From Monocercomonoides exilis PA203 (taxonomy: Eukaryota > Protista > Preaxostyla), in contig LSRY02000032.1 of the NCBI GenBank assembly GCA_001643675.2, positions 310,001 to 374,000 of the forward strand: 64,000 nucleotides of DNA, written 5' to 3'. A model generated the notes under the pieces. The model was given only the letters and a program-made list of their open reading frames with translations. It was not told where the DNA came from and made no database searches. Positions 444-30,400 of this stretch are shown piece by piece. Position 1 is the stretch's first letter. Every line of letters begins with the position of its first letter. Position numbers and translations under genes: made by a program.

Positions 444-3083
444 TATGCATTTGCTAATGACGTTATATTTCCAACGGAGTTTGCTTCATCTGCTTTTGAT
501 ATTTTCAGTACTTTTTTCTTTTTTTCTCAGCACCGAGTAAAAACTTATTTACGAAAAATCTTACAAGGCAATTGTAGATGGAGTGATGAATGGATTTAAT
601 GGGTGTATATTTGCATACGGACAAACAGGAACAGGAAAAACATTTACAATGGCTGGAACCCCTGAACTGCCAGGCATCACACAACGTTCATTTGATCATA
701 TCTTTGCAGCAATAAATCAAGCAGACGATACAAAAAAATTTCTTGTTACAGTTTCGTACCTTGAAATTTACAATGAGCAAGTAAAGGATTTATTGTCGAA
801 AGCACCAGGATCAGATAACATAAAAATTCACGAATCGCCAGAACTTTAGATTCATGTTCCAGATTTGACAGCACTTTTATGCGAAAATTCCGCATCGATG
901 CAGCAAGTGATGGATCGTGGAGCAAAAAGACGAACAGTAGCAGCGACAAAGATGAACCAAGAGTCTTCTCGTTCGCATGGTATTTTCATTATTTCGATAG
1001 AATGTGCAGATGTGGCCATTTTGGATGCTGATGGGAAGCCTCTTGTGAAAGTGGGCAGGCTGAATCTTGTTGATCTGGCTGGTTCTGAGCGTCAGTCAAA
1101 AACAGATGCTTCAGGCAAGCAGCTTGTGGAAGCTGGTAACATCAACAAGTCGCTGTCAACACTGGGAGAGGTCATCAACAAGCTGACCAGAAAGAACCCA
1201 GAATTCATTCCCCATCGAAACAGCAAACTGACGCGACTTTTGCAGGACTCGCTTGGCGGGAACAGCCGAACAGTGATGATTGCAAACATCGGCCCAGCTG
1301 AATACAACTACGAAGAGACATCCTCAACGTTGAGGTATGCAAACAGGGCAAAGCAGATTAAGAACAATCCAGTGGTGAACTGTGCTCAGGATGCGATGGT
1401 GCTGAAGATGCAGGAGGAAATAGCGAAACTGAAGAAGATGCTGGAAGAGCGCAACACAGAGAAAATTGTGGTGGCTGACGAAGAAATCATCAAGAAGCTG
1501 CAGATTGAAATGGAAGAGAAAGCGAAGGAAAAAGAAAGTGCATTGGAGAGTGAGAAGGAGCGACTGGAAGAAGAACGGAAGAAGATTGAGCAAGAATTGA
1601 GAAGGAGAGAAGAAGAGGCAGCGAAGGAAAGAGCAGAGAGAGAGATAGCAGCGCGGAAGCTGAAGCACATGGAGGAGAAAGTGATCAAAGGAGGGACACA
1701 TCTGCAGGACATGCAAGCGAAGCACAAGAGGCAGATGGAAGAGATGAAGCGGAAGATGGAGGAGCAGAAGAAAGAGGAAGAGCGGAAGAGGGTGGAAATG
1801 GAGAAGGCGAAGGAAAGAGAGCTGGAGGAGGAGCGGAAGCGGCTGCTGGCAGACAAGGAGACGCTGGAGATTGACTTGCGGCGGACGCACCAGTCGTTGG
1901 AGGAGGAAGTGGCACACAAAAACAAACAGTTGGAGAAGATTCTGCAGTCGCACAAAGAGGCGAGGCGGCAGGTGCAGGTGATGGACGAGGAGATGAACCA
2001 GCTGAAGCAGCAGGCGGAAGACGAGATCAAACGCCTAGAAGACGAAAACGAGGAGCTGCAGACAGAGTTTGAGATGGAGCGCAACATGATGATCGACTCG
2101 ATTGCAGAGCCGCAGACGCAGATGAAGCGGCGCAGACGATCATCCAGCTGTTCATCCCGCCGCACGAAGTGGATAAGATCCGGGAGCGTGCGATGTGGAG
2201 CGAGGAGGACGAGGTGTGGGACATCCAAGGCGCAGAGCACTCAGGAAACGCGCTGCGTGCCATCCGAATGCCGTCGACGAGATGTTGATGCAGGTGCGTG
2301 CAGCATACTCATCAGACTCAGCCTCTTCTTCCTCCAATCCACCGGGTGGCTCCAACTCCTCCGTCGTCTTCATCCGCCTCGCCATTCCAGTCAGCATCTG
2401 CAGGCGATGGGGCACAAAGGAAAGCGCGCTCTTCGATGGGAGGCACCCGACGGCCGACGTCTTCTGGTGGAGCATCTGGCACAGGTGCACCTTCAATGGC
2501 ATCCACACAGCGCCATGCTGCTCCAATTGCACCGGCAGCTGTTGCTTCGAACGTGAAGAGGAGGAGAGAAGACGAGCGGTCGCTGATCCGTCCGTCGATG
2601 GAGATGCACCGAAAGACAACACAGGAGATGGGCTTCAGTGAGATAGAGACGAAGGAGCATATTTCGCGGCTGGAGGAGGAGACGCTGAATGTGCCAGAGG
2701 ACGATGAGCTGCTGTAGCCAGCTGAGTCGCTTCCTCGTGTCTTCTCAGGAGGAGGAGGTGTTGGCGGAGGAGGAGGAAGCGATGGAAGAGGAGGGATGAT
2801 GGGAGAGGACGAAGGGGATGAATATGAAGGAGAAGGAGACGGATATGGAGGGTATCCACAGGCAATGATGGATGGAAGGAGAGACTATCGAGGAGGAGGA
2901 GGAGGAGGAGGAGGAAGGCAGATGGAGGCGAGAATGGGGAGCAGAGAAGGTGCACAGGCACAGTCTGGGAATTCTGGTAGAATGCGACCGGAATCAGCAA
3001 CGAGAACGAAAGCAGATGTTGGAGGAGGAGTTAGTGAGATGGGAAGTGGGAGTGCTTGGAAAAGAAATTCCTTTAATTGTTGA
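444..3083 (+). pseudogene. Kinesin-2 (KIF3-like) motor gene, 5'-truncated with multiple lesions
   Basis: Motor motifs FAYGQTGTGKT, YLEIYNE, NQESSRSH, LVDLAGSER, HRNSKLTRLLQDSLGGNS; coiled coil; KIF3-like tail IIQLFIPPHEVDKIRERAMW in a shifted frame. Intron 479-530. In-frame TAA 538-540, TAG 847-849, frameshift ~2129, TGA 2286-2288, TAG 2715-2717. No N-terminal VxVxVRxRP exon seen. Assembly error cannot be excluded. Confidence 0.8.
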
Positions 3084-3530
3084 ATATGTTAAATGATTTC
3101 CATTTAATAATATGATGAAATATATCGTTGGATGAAATATAAAAGACTGTCTTCACCAAAAATAAAACCTAAAAAATAATTTGAAATGATACCAACACAA
3201 ATTCGAGTGTATATTAAAGGTCAAATATATCACCTAAAAATTGAATAAGTCATTAAATATCACTCTTCTTCATGCAAAGCATATAAAAAACAACTCTTTG
3301 AAAATGATTCTTAATCGATTAAAAAAAGACTCAATAAGTCATCTACAAAATATAATAAATATTGACAAATACAAATTTGCGATATAGATTTTTAAAATTA
3401 AACCAAAAACAAAACAAAACAATTTTGAAAAAAAATATGAAGAAAATACAATTATTATACATATTATGATCTTAACCATAGTTTTGTCATTTTCAATATA
3501 GTATAAAAGCAGAGTTAAAAAGAAAAAACT

Positions 3531-3684
3531 AACATACCTGGAGTTGAATGCAGGGCGATCAATAAGGCCCTGGTCCATGTATAAGCGCGTCATTGCACTC
3601 GGGCTGCGTTTATGCGTGTGATCTACCCCAGTGGTGGATTTCTGACTCATAGTTTTTTGATCTGTGAGGCATTCGTGCCTCGCC
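3531..3684 (+). ncRNA. U1: U1 spliceosomal snRNA with variant 5' arm ACAUACCUG
   Basis: 5' ACATACCTG 3532-3540; helix H GAGT 3541-3544 / ACTC 3645-3648; stem I CAGGGC/GCCCTG enclosing U1-70K-type loop GATCAATAAG 3557-3566; stem II with U1A site ATTGCAC 3592-3598; stem III ATCTACC/GGTGGAT; Sm-like site ATAGTTTTTTG 3649-3659; terminal stem GTGAGGCA-TTCG-TGCCTCGC 3664-3683. Order and spacing match U1. Confidence 0.93.
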
Positions 3685-4307
3685 TAATAATAGTTCTATC
3701 TGACTTTGATTGTGTTTTGAATGAATTTTGAAATGTTTAAATTTAAAATGTAAGTAGTAAATATTTGGAGTATATTAAAGATGAAATATATTTATTGTTG
3801 GTTGAATAAGCAAGTAAAAGTTATAAGTATGAAATTTAAGGATTGATTTGTTTATGGAAGGTTGTTTGACTGCTTGTTGATTGGGGTCACTGGAAAAGTA
3901 TAATAAGAAAACGATTAAGTTGTTGAGAAGAATCAACGTATTAACTTTTCATTCATTTGTTAAAAGTTTAAAGGGAACTTTTTCTTCAATTGCAATTAAA
4001 AGTTTAAAAATAGATTTATCATCATATTTTGTTATATTTTTTTTCGATAATGAAAACATAATTGTGTTATTGAGGTTAACATATTATTATTTAATTTTAT
4101 TTTTTATTTTTTATTTCTTATTTTTTCGCTTATATTGTGTGTTATATTGATTGATTACAAATGATTCAACATGTTTTGATTGATAATGACAAATTAACTT
4201 GCAATGTGATGATTTCTCGAAAATGAAACCTTGAACGTTGTCAATTATTCATTTTATGAAAATAGTAATGGGCAAATAACAAAATCTTATTTCATTTGTG
4301 AAGTACG

Positions 4308-27489: not shown

Positions 27490-30400
27490 ATGAGTAAAGA
27501 AAAGAAAAAAACTGAGGTGAAAGAAGAAGAAAATAAATGGTGGCTTTCAACTGGAACGAGTAAGAAAGAAGAACGATGGAAAACTTTGGAACATAATGGA
27601 GTTATTTTGCCTCCTCCATATGAGCCTCATGGCATTAAAATGCTATATGATGGGAAACCTGTAACTTTGACGCCAAAGCAAGAAGAAATCGCAACTTATT
27701 ATGCTCAGGTTATGGAAAGAGAATCTTCAAAAAAACCGATCTTTCAAAAAAATTTCTTCAATGAATTTCGCAAAGTTCTTGGAAAGGCATCAAATATTTG
27801 AAATTATTTGATCATGTTTATTATTTTTGATGACTTTTTACAATTTTAGGATCATGTTATTCAGGAATTTGGTCGCTGTGATTTTTCACCAATCTATGAA
27901 CATTTACAGTCTATCATAGATGCTCGAAACAGACTTTCTCCTGAAGAAAAGAAGGTTGCGCTAGAAATGAATTATTTTCTAACAATTGCTAAATTTCTAT
28001 TTTTAGGCACTTCGTGAAGCGAACAAAAAAGAAACAGAAAAATATCAATATGCTTTGGTTGATGGCCAAAAAGAAAAGGTTGGAAACTTTAAAATTGAGC
28101 CACCTGGACTCTTTCAGGGAAGAGGATCTCATCCAAAAGCTGGAAAATTGAAGGTTTCTTTTTATTTTTTAAATTATTATTACATTTTTTTATGGAATCT
28201 TTCATTCATTTATTTCGATATATGTAGGGAAGAGTTGAACCAGAAGACATAATTATTAATATCGGAGAAGGAGCAAAAGTTCCAGAACCCCCTGCAGGAA
28301 GACATTGGAAAGATGTTATTCATGATCATTCAGTATGAAATAAAGCAACTAATAAGTGATTACTTGAAAATCATTAATTTTCAACAGGTGACGTGGTTGG
28401 CAACATGGAAAGATACGCTCAACAATCATCCGAAATATGTTTTTCTTGCTGCAACAAGTAGATTTCGAGGTGAAAGTGATATGAAGAAGTTTCAAAAAGC
28501 ACGATGCTTGCATCTGCACATCGATAAAGTTCGATCTGATTACTGGAAGAAAATCAAAAGTCGCGATAGAGAAGAAAAGCAGTTGGGTGTTGCAGTATAT
28601 GTATGACCTTTTCTCTTTTTTGTCTTTTGGATGATGATATTTTAAATGTATTTATTTCATTTTTGAAATATTGAATACCATGATGAAATTTTATGTTAAT
28701 TCAATTATAATTATAATTATAGCTCATTGATAAATTAGCAATTAGAGCTGGAAATGAAAAGCCTGATGACACAGCTGATACAGTTGGTTGTTGCACGCTG
28801 AAAGTTGGGAATGTTACATTTGAAGATGAAACAAAGGTTCATTTTGATTTTTTGGGTAAAGATTCTATCAGATATGATAGAGTTGTTGAACTTGATAAAG
28901 AGGTACAAGCAACAATGCGCACATTTTGCTACGTTGAAGATAAAAAGAAACGAAAGAAAGATGAAGACTTGCTATTTGAAAAGTTTGCTATTTTCAAATT
29001 TTATAATTTTTTTTTATTTTTTATTTTAAAAAATAATATTAATATTGTTTATTATGCTTGCTTTGAACATATCAATTGTAATGAAACTTAATATTTTGAA
29101 ATTAACTTTCAGAATAAACACCACGAAGTTAAACAAATATCTGCATCAATTTCTTCACGGACTTACAGCTAAGAACTTCCGTACATACAACGCCTGCATC
29201 ACCCTCCAGCAGCAACTCGATGAAACGCCTGCAAAGCTAAAAGGAGATCAGCCAGCTCTTCTTCAATTTTACAACCGAGCTAATTTTGAAGTGGCGAGGT
29301 TGTGTAATCATCAACGGGCAATTCCAAAAGGATTTCAACACACTCAATGGATATCTGAAGCTAAAATAAAGGCGCTTGAAAATGAACGAGATTATGTGCG
29401 TGCGCTGTTGGCACTTAGGCAAGGAGGAAGAAAAGGCGACAGTGAAAAAAGTTCGAAAAAGGCTGCACCAAAAAAACCGAAAAAATCGAAAAAAGATAAT
29501 GATGAAGAAGACGAAGAAGAGGAAGAGGAAGAGGAAGAAGCCAAAAAGCCAAAAAGAAAAACCAAAAAGAAGAGCGCAAAAGGAGAGGATGATGAAGAGG
29601 ATGATGATAGTGACGAAGATTTTGGATCATCGAAGAAGAAAAAGGCAAAGGCAAAACCTAAAGCTAATTCAAAGACAAAGGGAGCAAAGAAAACCAAAAA
29701 GTCAACAAAAAAGACTTCAGATTCAGATGAATCAGACATTGATTCTGATGATATGAATCAGATGGCGCAAAAATCATCAGCTAAAAAGACAAGGAAGACC
29801 AAAAAGGATACCAAGTCTTCTTCTGCTTTTGATGATCTTGATGAGCTGAAGCCGTTCGAAGCTTCTTCGTCGACATCTCCTTCATCAGATTCTCAGTCAC
29901 GAATGCCTGCATTGTACACATTACCGCCAATTACTGCTTCTGCTGCATCACTTCTTGAAGGATCAGCTGAATGGTTGAAAAAGGAGATAGAAGATGTTAA
30001 TAAGCAGCTGGTTACAATAAAGGAAGAAGTGTCAAAATATACATTGATCAAAGATGAGAAAATGGAAGATGATCTTTTGAGCAAAGACTTCGACGAAAAG
30101 AAAGTGGAAAAAAAGAAAAAGAAGGTGAAATCCAAAAAAGAGGAAGAGGATGAAGATGATGACAAAAGTGAGGAAGAAGCAACAAAATCAACGAAAAAAG
30201 AGACATCTAAAACAAAAACTACTTTAACGAAAGTTAAAAAAGAAGAGGACGATGCTTTGATTGAATTTGTCACCACCGAAAATACAACATCAACGGAATC
30301 TTCTTCTGCATCAGCATCATCACAGTCAGTTACAACTTCATTGTCGCAAAGTATGAAACTAAGTGCAGATGAGCTTGTTGAAATGAACAGGAAGCGCAAA

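Follow-up and report, generated by a model that had tools for sequence, protein, structure and literature searches.

A single-copy U1 snRNA with an altered splice-site arm and its predicted pairing with +4U donors in Monocercomonoides exilis

The 5' arm of U1 snRNA is among the most conserved RNA sequences of eukaryotes. In Entamoeba, Roy & Bowser 2022 described a U1 starting with AACAAAC together with GUUUGU(U) donors, and in Mastigamoeba balamuthi an ACGUAC arm together with GUGCGC donors (bioRxiv 10.1101/2022.06.08.495308). For Physarum polycephalum, the account cited in the same paper gives an ACAUAC arm with GUAUGU donors and a mixture of standard and modified U1 copies. Yeasts, Giardia and Trichomonas were reported there not to have compensated: Trichomonas keeps ACUUAC with GUAUGU donors (bioRxiv 10.1101/2022.06.08.495308), and in Giardia donors of the form [G/A/C]UAUGUU meet U1 1-ACUUAC-6 with an acknowledged U-U pair (PMC3510501). 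Parker et al. 2023 found ACUUACC to be invariant in 236 genomes and named a change of pseudouridine 5 to A as a conceivable compensation (PMC10581693). Both Parker et al. 2023 and Roy & Bowser 2022 ask why the U1 arm is almost never adjusted in lineages with GUAUGU-type donors.

Monocercomonoides exilis is a culturable, intron-rich metamonad, and its relatives Giardia and Trichomonas are without the change reported here. Candidates for its snRNAs were mentioned by Hudson et al. only as 'data not shown' (PMC6679479), and a search of the literature, in which incomplete coverage keeps absence from being proof, returned no description of its U1 arm. We found that the M. exilis U1 carries exactly the pseudouridine-5-to-A change that had been proposed hypothetically as compensation (PMC10581693). 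This is a new case, and the first in a metamonad, of the rare co-adaptation of U1 and splice sites known from Entamoeba and relatives, here with a single-copy U1 in an intron-rich genome. The initial annotation of the locus had set it beside budding yeast, which prefers +4U yet keeps ACUUAC, and had proposed a comparison with diplomonads and parabasalids; the statement on yeast agrees with the literature (PMC10581693), and Giardia and Trichomonas are both reported with ACUUAC (PMC3510501; bioRxiv 10.1101/2022.06.08.495308).

The U1 gene and its copy number

The window, i.e., the whole stretch of 64 kb at C28:310001-374000, was scanned against Rfam using cmscan, and U1 was the single family matched. 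Positions 3530-3684 of the plus strand form a full-length U1 snRNA (RF00003, model positions 1-166) with a score of 83.6 bits, compared with a gathering threshold of 69.5, and an E-value of 3.3e-19. The features of the gene and its upstream region (window coordinates), and the gene for one U1 protein, are the following.

3464..3481, plus strand: candidate proximal sequence element TTATGATCTTAACCATAG, with a putative promoter function, containing a motif common to the U6 upstream region
3499..3509, plus strand: TATA-type promoter element TAGTATAAAAG, ~30 nt upstream of the U1 start (-32)
3531..3684, plus strand: U1 snRNA gene, matching the full RF00003 model, single copy in the genome
3531..3541, plus strand: 5' splice-site-pairing arm AACAUACCUGG, from the sequence and its Rfam alignment to AUACUUACCUGG, unpaired in the predicted fold
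3557..3566, plus strand: stem-loop I loop GAUCAAUAAG, a U1-70K-type binding loop, aligned to the consensus GAUCAaGAAG
3591..3598, plus strand: stem-loop II loop CAUUGCAC, a U1A/SNF-type binding motif, identical to the Rfam consensus
3649..3660, plus strand: Sm-site-like single-stranded AUAGUUUUUUGA, aligned to AUAAUUUgUGg, unpaired between the junction and stem-loop IV
3664..3683, plus strand: stem-loop IV with a UUCG loop, from the Rfam alignment and the predicted fold
C39:357002-357220, elsewhere in the genome: gene with a U1-70K N-terminal domain

The arm reads AACAUACCUG, with the core ACAUAC in place of ACUUAC. In the DNA the gene starts at ...AAAAAACT|AACATACCTGG..., with ...aaaaaacu preceding AACAUACCUGG. 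A3534 aligns to U1 model position 5, a U in the consensus AUACUUACCUG, and position 2 of the arm is likewise A for a consensus U in the Rfam alignment. When the arm is set against NNACUUACCUG, 10 of the 11 positions are alignable, with U-to-A changes at positions 5 and 2. The U at position 5 of U1 is a pseudouridine in model organisms. A3534 is the partner of intron position +4, and the neighboring U3535 is U1 position 6, the partner of +3. As predicted by RNAfold, the RNA forms a U1 cloverleaf (z = -3.2), in which the 5' arm is free, SL1-SL3 join in a four-way junction, AUAGUUUUUUGA is single-stranded and the molecule ends in a hairpin. The initial annotation had pointed out a complete U1 fold at 3531-3684 and an A at 3534 in the splice-site arm, and both are borne out, the former by the full model score and the cloverleaf fold and the latter in the assembly sequence.

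Genes for zf-U1 (U1C-type) zinc-finger proteins are also present in the M. exilis genome, and together with the U1-70K gene they lead us to expect a U1 snRNP. In two U1C-type loci, C7:67368-67568 and C1:1498141-1498341, the 38-residue domain is divided between two exons at the same point, near profile position 18, a resemblance that suggests a recent duplication.

The upstream regions of U1 and U6 share two motifs. The 11-mer TAGTATAAAAG recurs at -37 of the single U6 gene, and TTATGATC is found upstream of both snRNA genes, at -67 in U1 and at -77 in U6. The distance between TTATGATC and TAGTATAAAAG is 5 bp greater in U6, which lies on the minus strand, than in U1. These motifs fit a shared snRNA-type promoter, and may represent a candidate oxymonad snRNA promoter consisting of a PSE plus a TATA element. 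Judging from sequence, the locus is in all probability the functional, single-copy U1 snRNA gene of M. exilis, and is presumably expressed, for which the promoter motifs in common with U6 are indirect support.

The M. exilis PA203 genome that was searched comprises 82.3 Mb (82,301,135 bp) in 101 contigs. A covariance-model search, in which the best candidates were scored, gave one U1 locus, and blastn with the U1 gene itself over the whole genome gave the same single locus. The pattern ACNNACCTG...ATCANNAAG...ATTGCAC, which is blind to arm positions 5 and 6, had one genomic match, again the U1 locus. No second U1, canonical or altered, was found in the 82.3 Mb by the covariance model, blastn or the arm-agnostic pattern; the sole U1 found in the genome bears the altered arm, and is apparently the genome's single U1. 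A search for all copies with the Rfam U1 model, which had been proposed with the initial annotation, was among these and found no canonical ACUUAC copy in the assembly.

It could be argued that A3534 is an assembly error, or that the locus is a variant or a pseudogene and that a canonical ACUUACCUG-initiated copy missing from the assembly is the working U1, as in the mixed copies of Physarum and of uncultured eukaryotes. Several metagenomic contigs do have canonical and ACAUAC copies side by side, and the covariance-model search of the genome scores best candidates only; but three different searches, one of them arm-blind, agree on exactly one U1, and the assembly of 101 contigs includes ten complete chromosomes and was polished with Illumina reads (PMC8767320). 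The substitution also lies outside any homopolymer, and the locus has every U1 protein-binding motif as well as promoter motifs in common with U6. We thus consider an artefact or a minor copy to be very improbable.

JGI metagenome contigs were scanned for ACATACCTG followed by both U1 loops, which gave 23 loci, and all of the 20 that were Rfam-scanned hold a U1 above the Rfam threshold. In L067, L069, L071, L073, L074, L081 and L086, from uncultured eukaryotes, the contig holds a canonical ACUUAC copy beside the ACAUAC U1, and in L081 an ACUCAC copy as well, indicating that ACAUAC occurs repeatedly in nature as a variant isoform. A marine group (L076-L080, L082, L083, L085 and L088, the last not Rfam-scanned) has an ACAUAC U1 and no canonical copy on those contigs. 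In most of the scanned members of this group the U1 is found inside dense small-RNA clusters, with U2, U4, U5, U6, 5S, SRP RNA and many tRNAs in varying combinations. The ACAUAC contigs vary in coding content, one carrying many overlapping ORFs and another hardly any. No metagenomic U1 among those retrieved resembles the M. exilis U1 in sequence. M. exilis stands out in that the ACAUAC copy is the only U1 found.

The gene beside U1 (566-2859, plus strand) is a kinesin that is ~98% identical to the annotated 'kinesin 2' (P0003), the gene for which is on the same contig at a distance of ~388 kb. The window copy is without the first ~78 codons, has an in-frame TAG at 847-849 inside the motor domain and shows scattered single-residue differences, and a ~50-nt poly(A) run lies upstream of it at 330-380; it is probably a degenerating duplicate. 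Synteny offers no route to the U1 genes of other oxymonads, the upstream neighbor being this degenerate kinesin 2 duplicate and the downstream neighbor a giant ORF with M. exilis paralogues only.

Donor sites of M. exilis introns

Introns of M. exilis were inferred without recourse to intron positions +3 to +8. For the first set (a), we used thirty kinesin and thirty Ras-family loci on many contigs, in which profiles built from intron-free paralogues served to locate exon pieces. Junctions were chosen among all frame-compatible GT/GC...AG pairs solely by the profile score of the joined peptide, and calls were retained if their margin and coordinate fit were good. The 32 distinct introns obtained have U (n = 28) or A (n = 4) at +4, and U (n = 23), G (n = 5) or A (n = 4) at +3; G is found at +5 in 25 and at -1 in 24 of them, and four have GC donors. 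U at +4 in 28/32 corresponds to a binomial p = 2e-7 versus a 43% U background, the background of U at +4 among candidate GT sites being 34-43%.

The second set (b) was obtained by exact mapping of published M. exilis protein models and includes nine introns, six of TOP1 and three of kinesin 2. An ORF in the window is 100% identical to the published M. exilis TOP1, a topoisomerase IB (P0001), and exact spliced mapping of P0001 placed its introns as follows (window coordinates).

27787..27849, plus strand: TOP1 intron 1, donor GCATCA
27955..28006, plus strand: TOP1 intron 2, donor GTTGCG
28154..28227, plus strand: TOP1 intron 3, donor GTTTCT
28333..28387, plus strand: TOP1 intron 4, donor GTATGA
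28601..28722, plus strand: TOP1 intron 5, donor GTATGA
28983..29112, plus strand: TOP1 intron 6, donor GTTTGC

The kinesin 2 gene at C28:~698 kb has the donors GTACGA, GTTTGC and GTTTGC. Seven of the nine introns of this set have +4U and none has +4A. Transcript contigs encoding M. exilis TOP1 were sought in databases, and none was found.

Taken together, sets (a) and (b) provide 41 donors from more than 25 contigs. The base at +4 is U in 35 (~85%), A in 4, C in 1 and G in 1, that at +3 is U in 28 (68%), A in 8 and G in 5, and +5 is G in 31. A (n = 17) and U (n = 15) are about equally frequent at +6, and the consensus of the 41 donors is AG|GUUUGA. The observation of a +4U preference is confirmed as real and statistically solid for this available sample. 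The initial annotation had listed 20 donors, with +4U in 18, A at +4 in none and U at +3 in 13. Its strong +4U bias and its mostly U +3 position reappear here (35/41 and 28/41, respectively), and its exclusion of A at +4 proves slightly too strong, given +4A in 4/41 (~10%). Nine of its 20 donors were reproduced, i.e., all six of TOP1 plus GTACGA, GTGTGA and GTTTGC.

As support only, a third set (c) was generated by a donor-blind de novo EM caller that combines coding potential with an acceptor model, applied to ~310 kb with window positions 4078-4128 masked. CCT loci were used only in this de novo set, their single-sequence profile being too weak for placing junctions. The 56 confident calls have +4 U in 39 and A in 9, and +3 U in 38; in the window, the caller found GTACGA, GTGTGA and GTTTGC. 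It is noisy, since among the 21 junctions in common with the homology-guided set the donors coincide in 14 and differ in 7. The donor sample overall amounts to between 41 and ~100 of the roughly 35,000 introns.

Whole-genome k-mer counts (82.3 Mb) gave 9,651 occurrences of AGGTTTG, 7,512 of AGGTTAG and 1,007 of AGGTAAG, the last compared with about 10,000 expected from base composition, though a local Markov model attributes a large part of the shortfall to low GTA and TAA-context frequencies. Given that AGGTAAG occurs only 1,007 times genome-wide, at most ~3% of the ~35,000 introns have the classical AG|GUAAG. Other k-mer contrasts were rejected as donor evidence: reversing the pattern does not provide a fair null, the AGGTTAG count is raised by telomere-like arrays, and a large part of the differences follows from a second-order Markov model. 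The upper bound alone is firm. The dense, irregularly spaced AGGTTAG at C1:2709321-2712129 looks like a telomere-like TTAGG/TTAGGG-type array that inflates the 7-mer count.

GC-AG introns are unusually common in M. exilis (5/41 donors, 12%), with donors such as GCTTGA, GCTTGT and GCATGA (loci L024, L026, L046 and L052, and position 27787 of the window). Two near-identical paralogues differ at one donor, GTATGA versus GCATGA, and the published TOP1 model includes the GC donor GCATCA. In practice, gene prediction and splice-site modelling in oxymonads should be based on AG|GUUUGW and permit ~10% GC-AG donors.

Pairing of the U1 arm with the donors

U1 position 5 faces intron position +4 in the standard register (PMC10581693), as the initial annotation had it for the base at 3534. 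With A at this position and donors that are strongly +4U, a Watson-Crick pair forms at +4, and A5 faces +4U in 35 of the 41 donors. RNAduplex was run on the 32 homology-guided donors, for which the mean duplex energy was -6.16 kcal/mol with the M. exilis A5 arm versus -4.72 kcal/mol with the same arm carrying U5. The A5 arm gave the better duplex with 22 donors and the U5 arm with 3, and the two arms tied for 7 (Wilcoxon p = 7e-4).

The match is a partial one. ACAUAC is the exact complement of GUAUGU, and the consensus of M. exilis is GUUUGA. Complementarity to the consensus donor is interrupted within +1 to +6, with +3U (28/41) opposite the U at U1 position 6, and the nearly even A and U at +6 (17 vs 15 of 41) face U1 A3. 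An Entamoeba-type ACAAAC arm would pair better than the M. exilis arm with 23 of the 32 donors, as predicted by RNAduplex. The initial annotation had proposed a compensatory change amounting to a re-specified 5' splice-site code. The predicted pairing gain at +4 (22/32 donors) agrees with the first half of this claim; as +3 is mostly U and still mismatched, and the consensus is GUUUGA and not GUAUGU, a one-base partial match does not warrant the terms 're-specified' or 'rewritten'. We conclude that one base of the arm is retuned, partially, and that the splice code is not rewritten.

During early spliceosome assembly, the U1 arm would pair with the 5' splice site in the usual register. The predicted contacts for AG|GUUUGA would be -2A/U10, -1G/C9, +1G/C8 and +2U/A7, followed by the mismatch of +3U with the U at U1 position 6, the Watson-Crick pair +4U/A5, which would be new to the M. 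exilis U1, and +5G/C4. A5 would reduce a two-nucleotide internal mismatch (+3, +4) to a single mismatch, adding ~1.4 kcal/mol of mean predicted duplex stability. An extra U1-donor base pair at +4 is the best-supported reading of these data, and we regard it as the probable one; the substitution would, we infer, have been selected as compensation and not merely tolerated.

The main rival is a neutral substitution that pairs fortuitously. It holds that +4U is set by U6 pairing, U5, Prp8 or U1C, and that at a relaxed position 5 a U-to-A change was fixed by drift in a single-copy gene, its pairing being immaterial to splice-site choice. More than 230 yeasts, Giardia and Trichomonas have +4U with an unaltered ACUUAC arm (PMC10581693; PMC3510501; bioRxiv 10.1101/2022.06.08.495308); since so many +4U lineages keep ACUUAC, compensation is not required, and the change could be neutral. 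The neighboring +3, left mismatched in most M. exilis introns, points the same way, as do the U1C-type and U1-70K genes, the products of which stabilise imperfect duplexes in model organisms. However, drift would have had to act on one of the most invariant RNA sequences known, which is invariant in 236 fungal genomes (PMC10581693), and the few known exceptions in the arm all match the local donor consensus (bioRxiv 10.1101/2022.06.08.495308). A is the only one of three possible substitutions that is complementary to the dominant +4 base, and the predicted duplex gain is significant over the donors (p = 7e-4). On balance, we consider neutral fixation unlikely.

The +4U preference might also reflect loss of U6 m6A, as in Saccharomycotina, with the U1 change incidental, and loss of METTL16 is indeed associated with +4U in yeasts (PMC10581693). 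The M. exilis genome has a Methyltransf_10 (METTL16/RlmF family, PF05971) gene at C7:1081343-1082784 (minus strand), matched in three exons, the CNPPFF catalytic motif (NPPF motif) being intact. The single U6 gene at C50:204981-205091 (88.6 bits) has the canonical GAUACAGAGAAGAUUAGCAUGG with its ACAGAGA box unchanged, and SNRNP27 has a marginal match. These were the two inspections, of the U6 box and of METTL16, that the initial annotation had suggested. On gene content, a canonical ACAGAGA box together with a METTL16-like gene with an intact motif means that METTL16 loss does not explain +4U, and we give this account very little credence. The coexistence of +4U with a METTL16-family gene is relevant to the link that has been proposed between U6 m6A and the +4 preference. 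The METTL16-like gene (L064-L066, C7:1079843-1084284, minus strand) is interrupted and trailed by very long low-complexity tracts rich in Ser, Glu and Lys, and an open frame of >830 aa follows the catalytic exon.

Relatives and known systems

The TOP1 locus of Blattamonas nauphoetae (L102, JARBJD010000162.1) has ten uniquely solvable introns, with U (n = 8), C (n = 2) and no A at +4, and U at +3 in 6. Donors such as GTTTGT, GTTTGC and GTATGG show a +4 pyrimidine and +3U bias, as in M. exilis; these introns are very short, most of the solvable ones measuring 31-52 nt. Streblomastix donors have A, U and G at +3 to +5 (PMC1501061). With +4U in Giardia, Trichomonas, Streblomastix and Blattamonas, parsimony suggests that +4U is older than the U1 change in the M. 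exilis lineage. In this likely order of events, +4U would be old in metamonads and U1 would have been altered later in the M. exilis lineage to match, after which +3 may have drifted, or may still be drifting, to U. After the hand-over from U1, +3U/+4U/+5G could pair with the G-A-C of U6 ACAGAGA (U-G wobble, U-A and G-C), and such pairing might explain the drift toward GUUUG.

A wider reading is that the whole 5' splice-site read-out shifted to +4U, with Watson-Crick pairing at both steps (U1 A5, then the central A of U6 ACAGAGA) and a METTL16-type enzyme kept. Oxymonads would then be an intermediate from ACUUAC to ACAAAC, and U1 re-specification a repeatable route. We offer it tentatively, as conceivable more than probable. 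If true, repeatable U1 re-specification would be feasible even with ~35,000 substrates, and not solely after massive intron loss. The contrast within the supergroup bears on when +4 base-pairing matters, and on whether the co-evolution of splice signals and snRNAs needs prior intron loss.

Among the described systems, Entamoeba resembles M. exilis in having a single U1 per genome with an altered arm that pairs with an atypical +4U donor, and shares with it the AAC 5' context and a near-identical donor consensus, GUUUG. It differs in that positions 5 and 6 are both altered (ACAAAC), giving full complementarity, whereas in M. exilis position 5 alone is altered and the +3 mismatch stays. Entamoeba is also an intron-poor amoebozoan, and M. 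exilis is a metamonad with about 35,000 introns. Mastigamoeba is, like M. exilis, intron-rich, with U1 position 5 alone altered to match the local +4 base; there, however, G5 pairs with +4C, and the organism belongs to another supergroup.

Physarum, according to the account cited for it, has the identical ACAUAC arm and a +4U preference. In that account standard and modified U1 copies are reported, compared with one detectable U1 in M. exilis, and the GUAUGU donors fit ACAUAC perfectly, whereas those of M. exilis are mostly GUUUG. The uncultured-contig U1s of L067, L069, L071, L073, L074 and L086 have, like M. exilis, the ACAUACCUG arm on otherwise normal U1 genes above the Rfam threshold, but their variant is one isoform beside canonical copies, and in M. 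exilis it is the sole U1. Giardia, Trichomonas and Saccharomycotina share +4U donors (GUAUGU) with M. exilis, and the first two are also Metamonada; all three keep ACUUAC and tolerate U-U (pseudouridine-U) at +4, and M. exilis does not (PMC3510501; PMC10581693).
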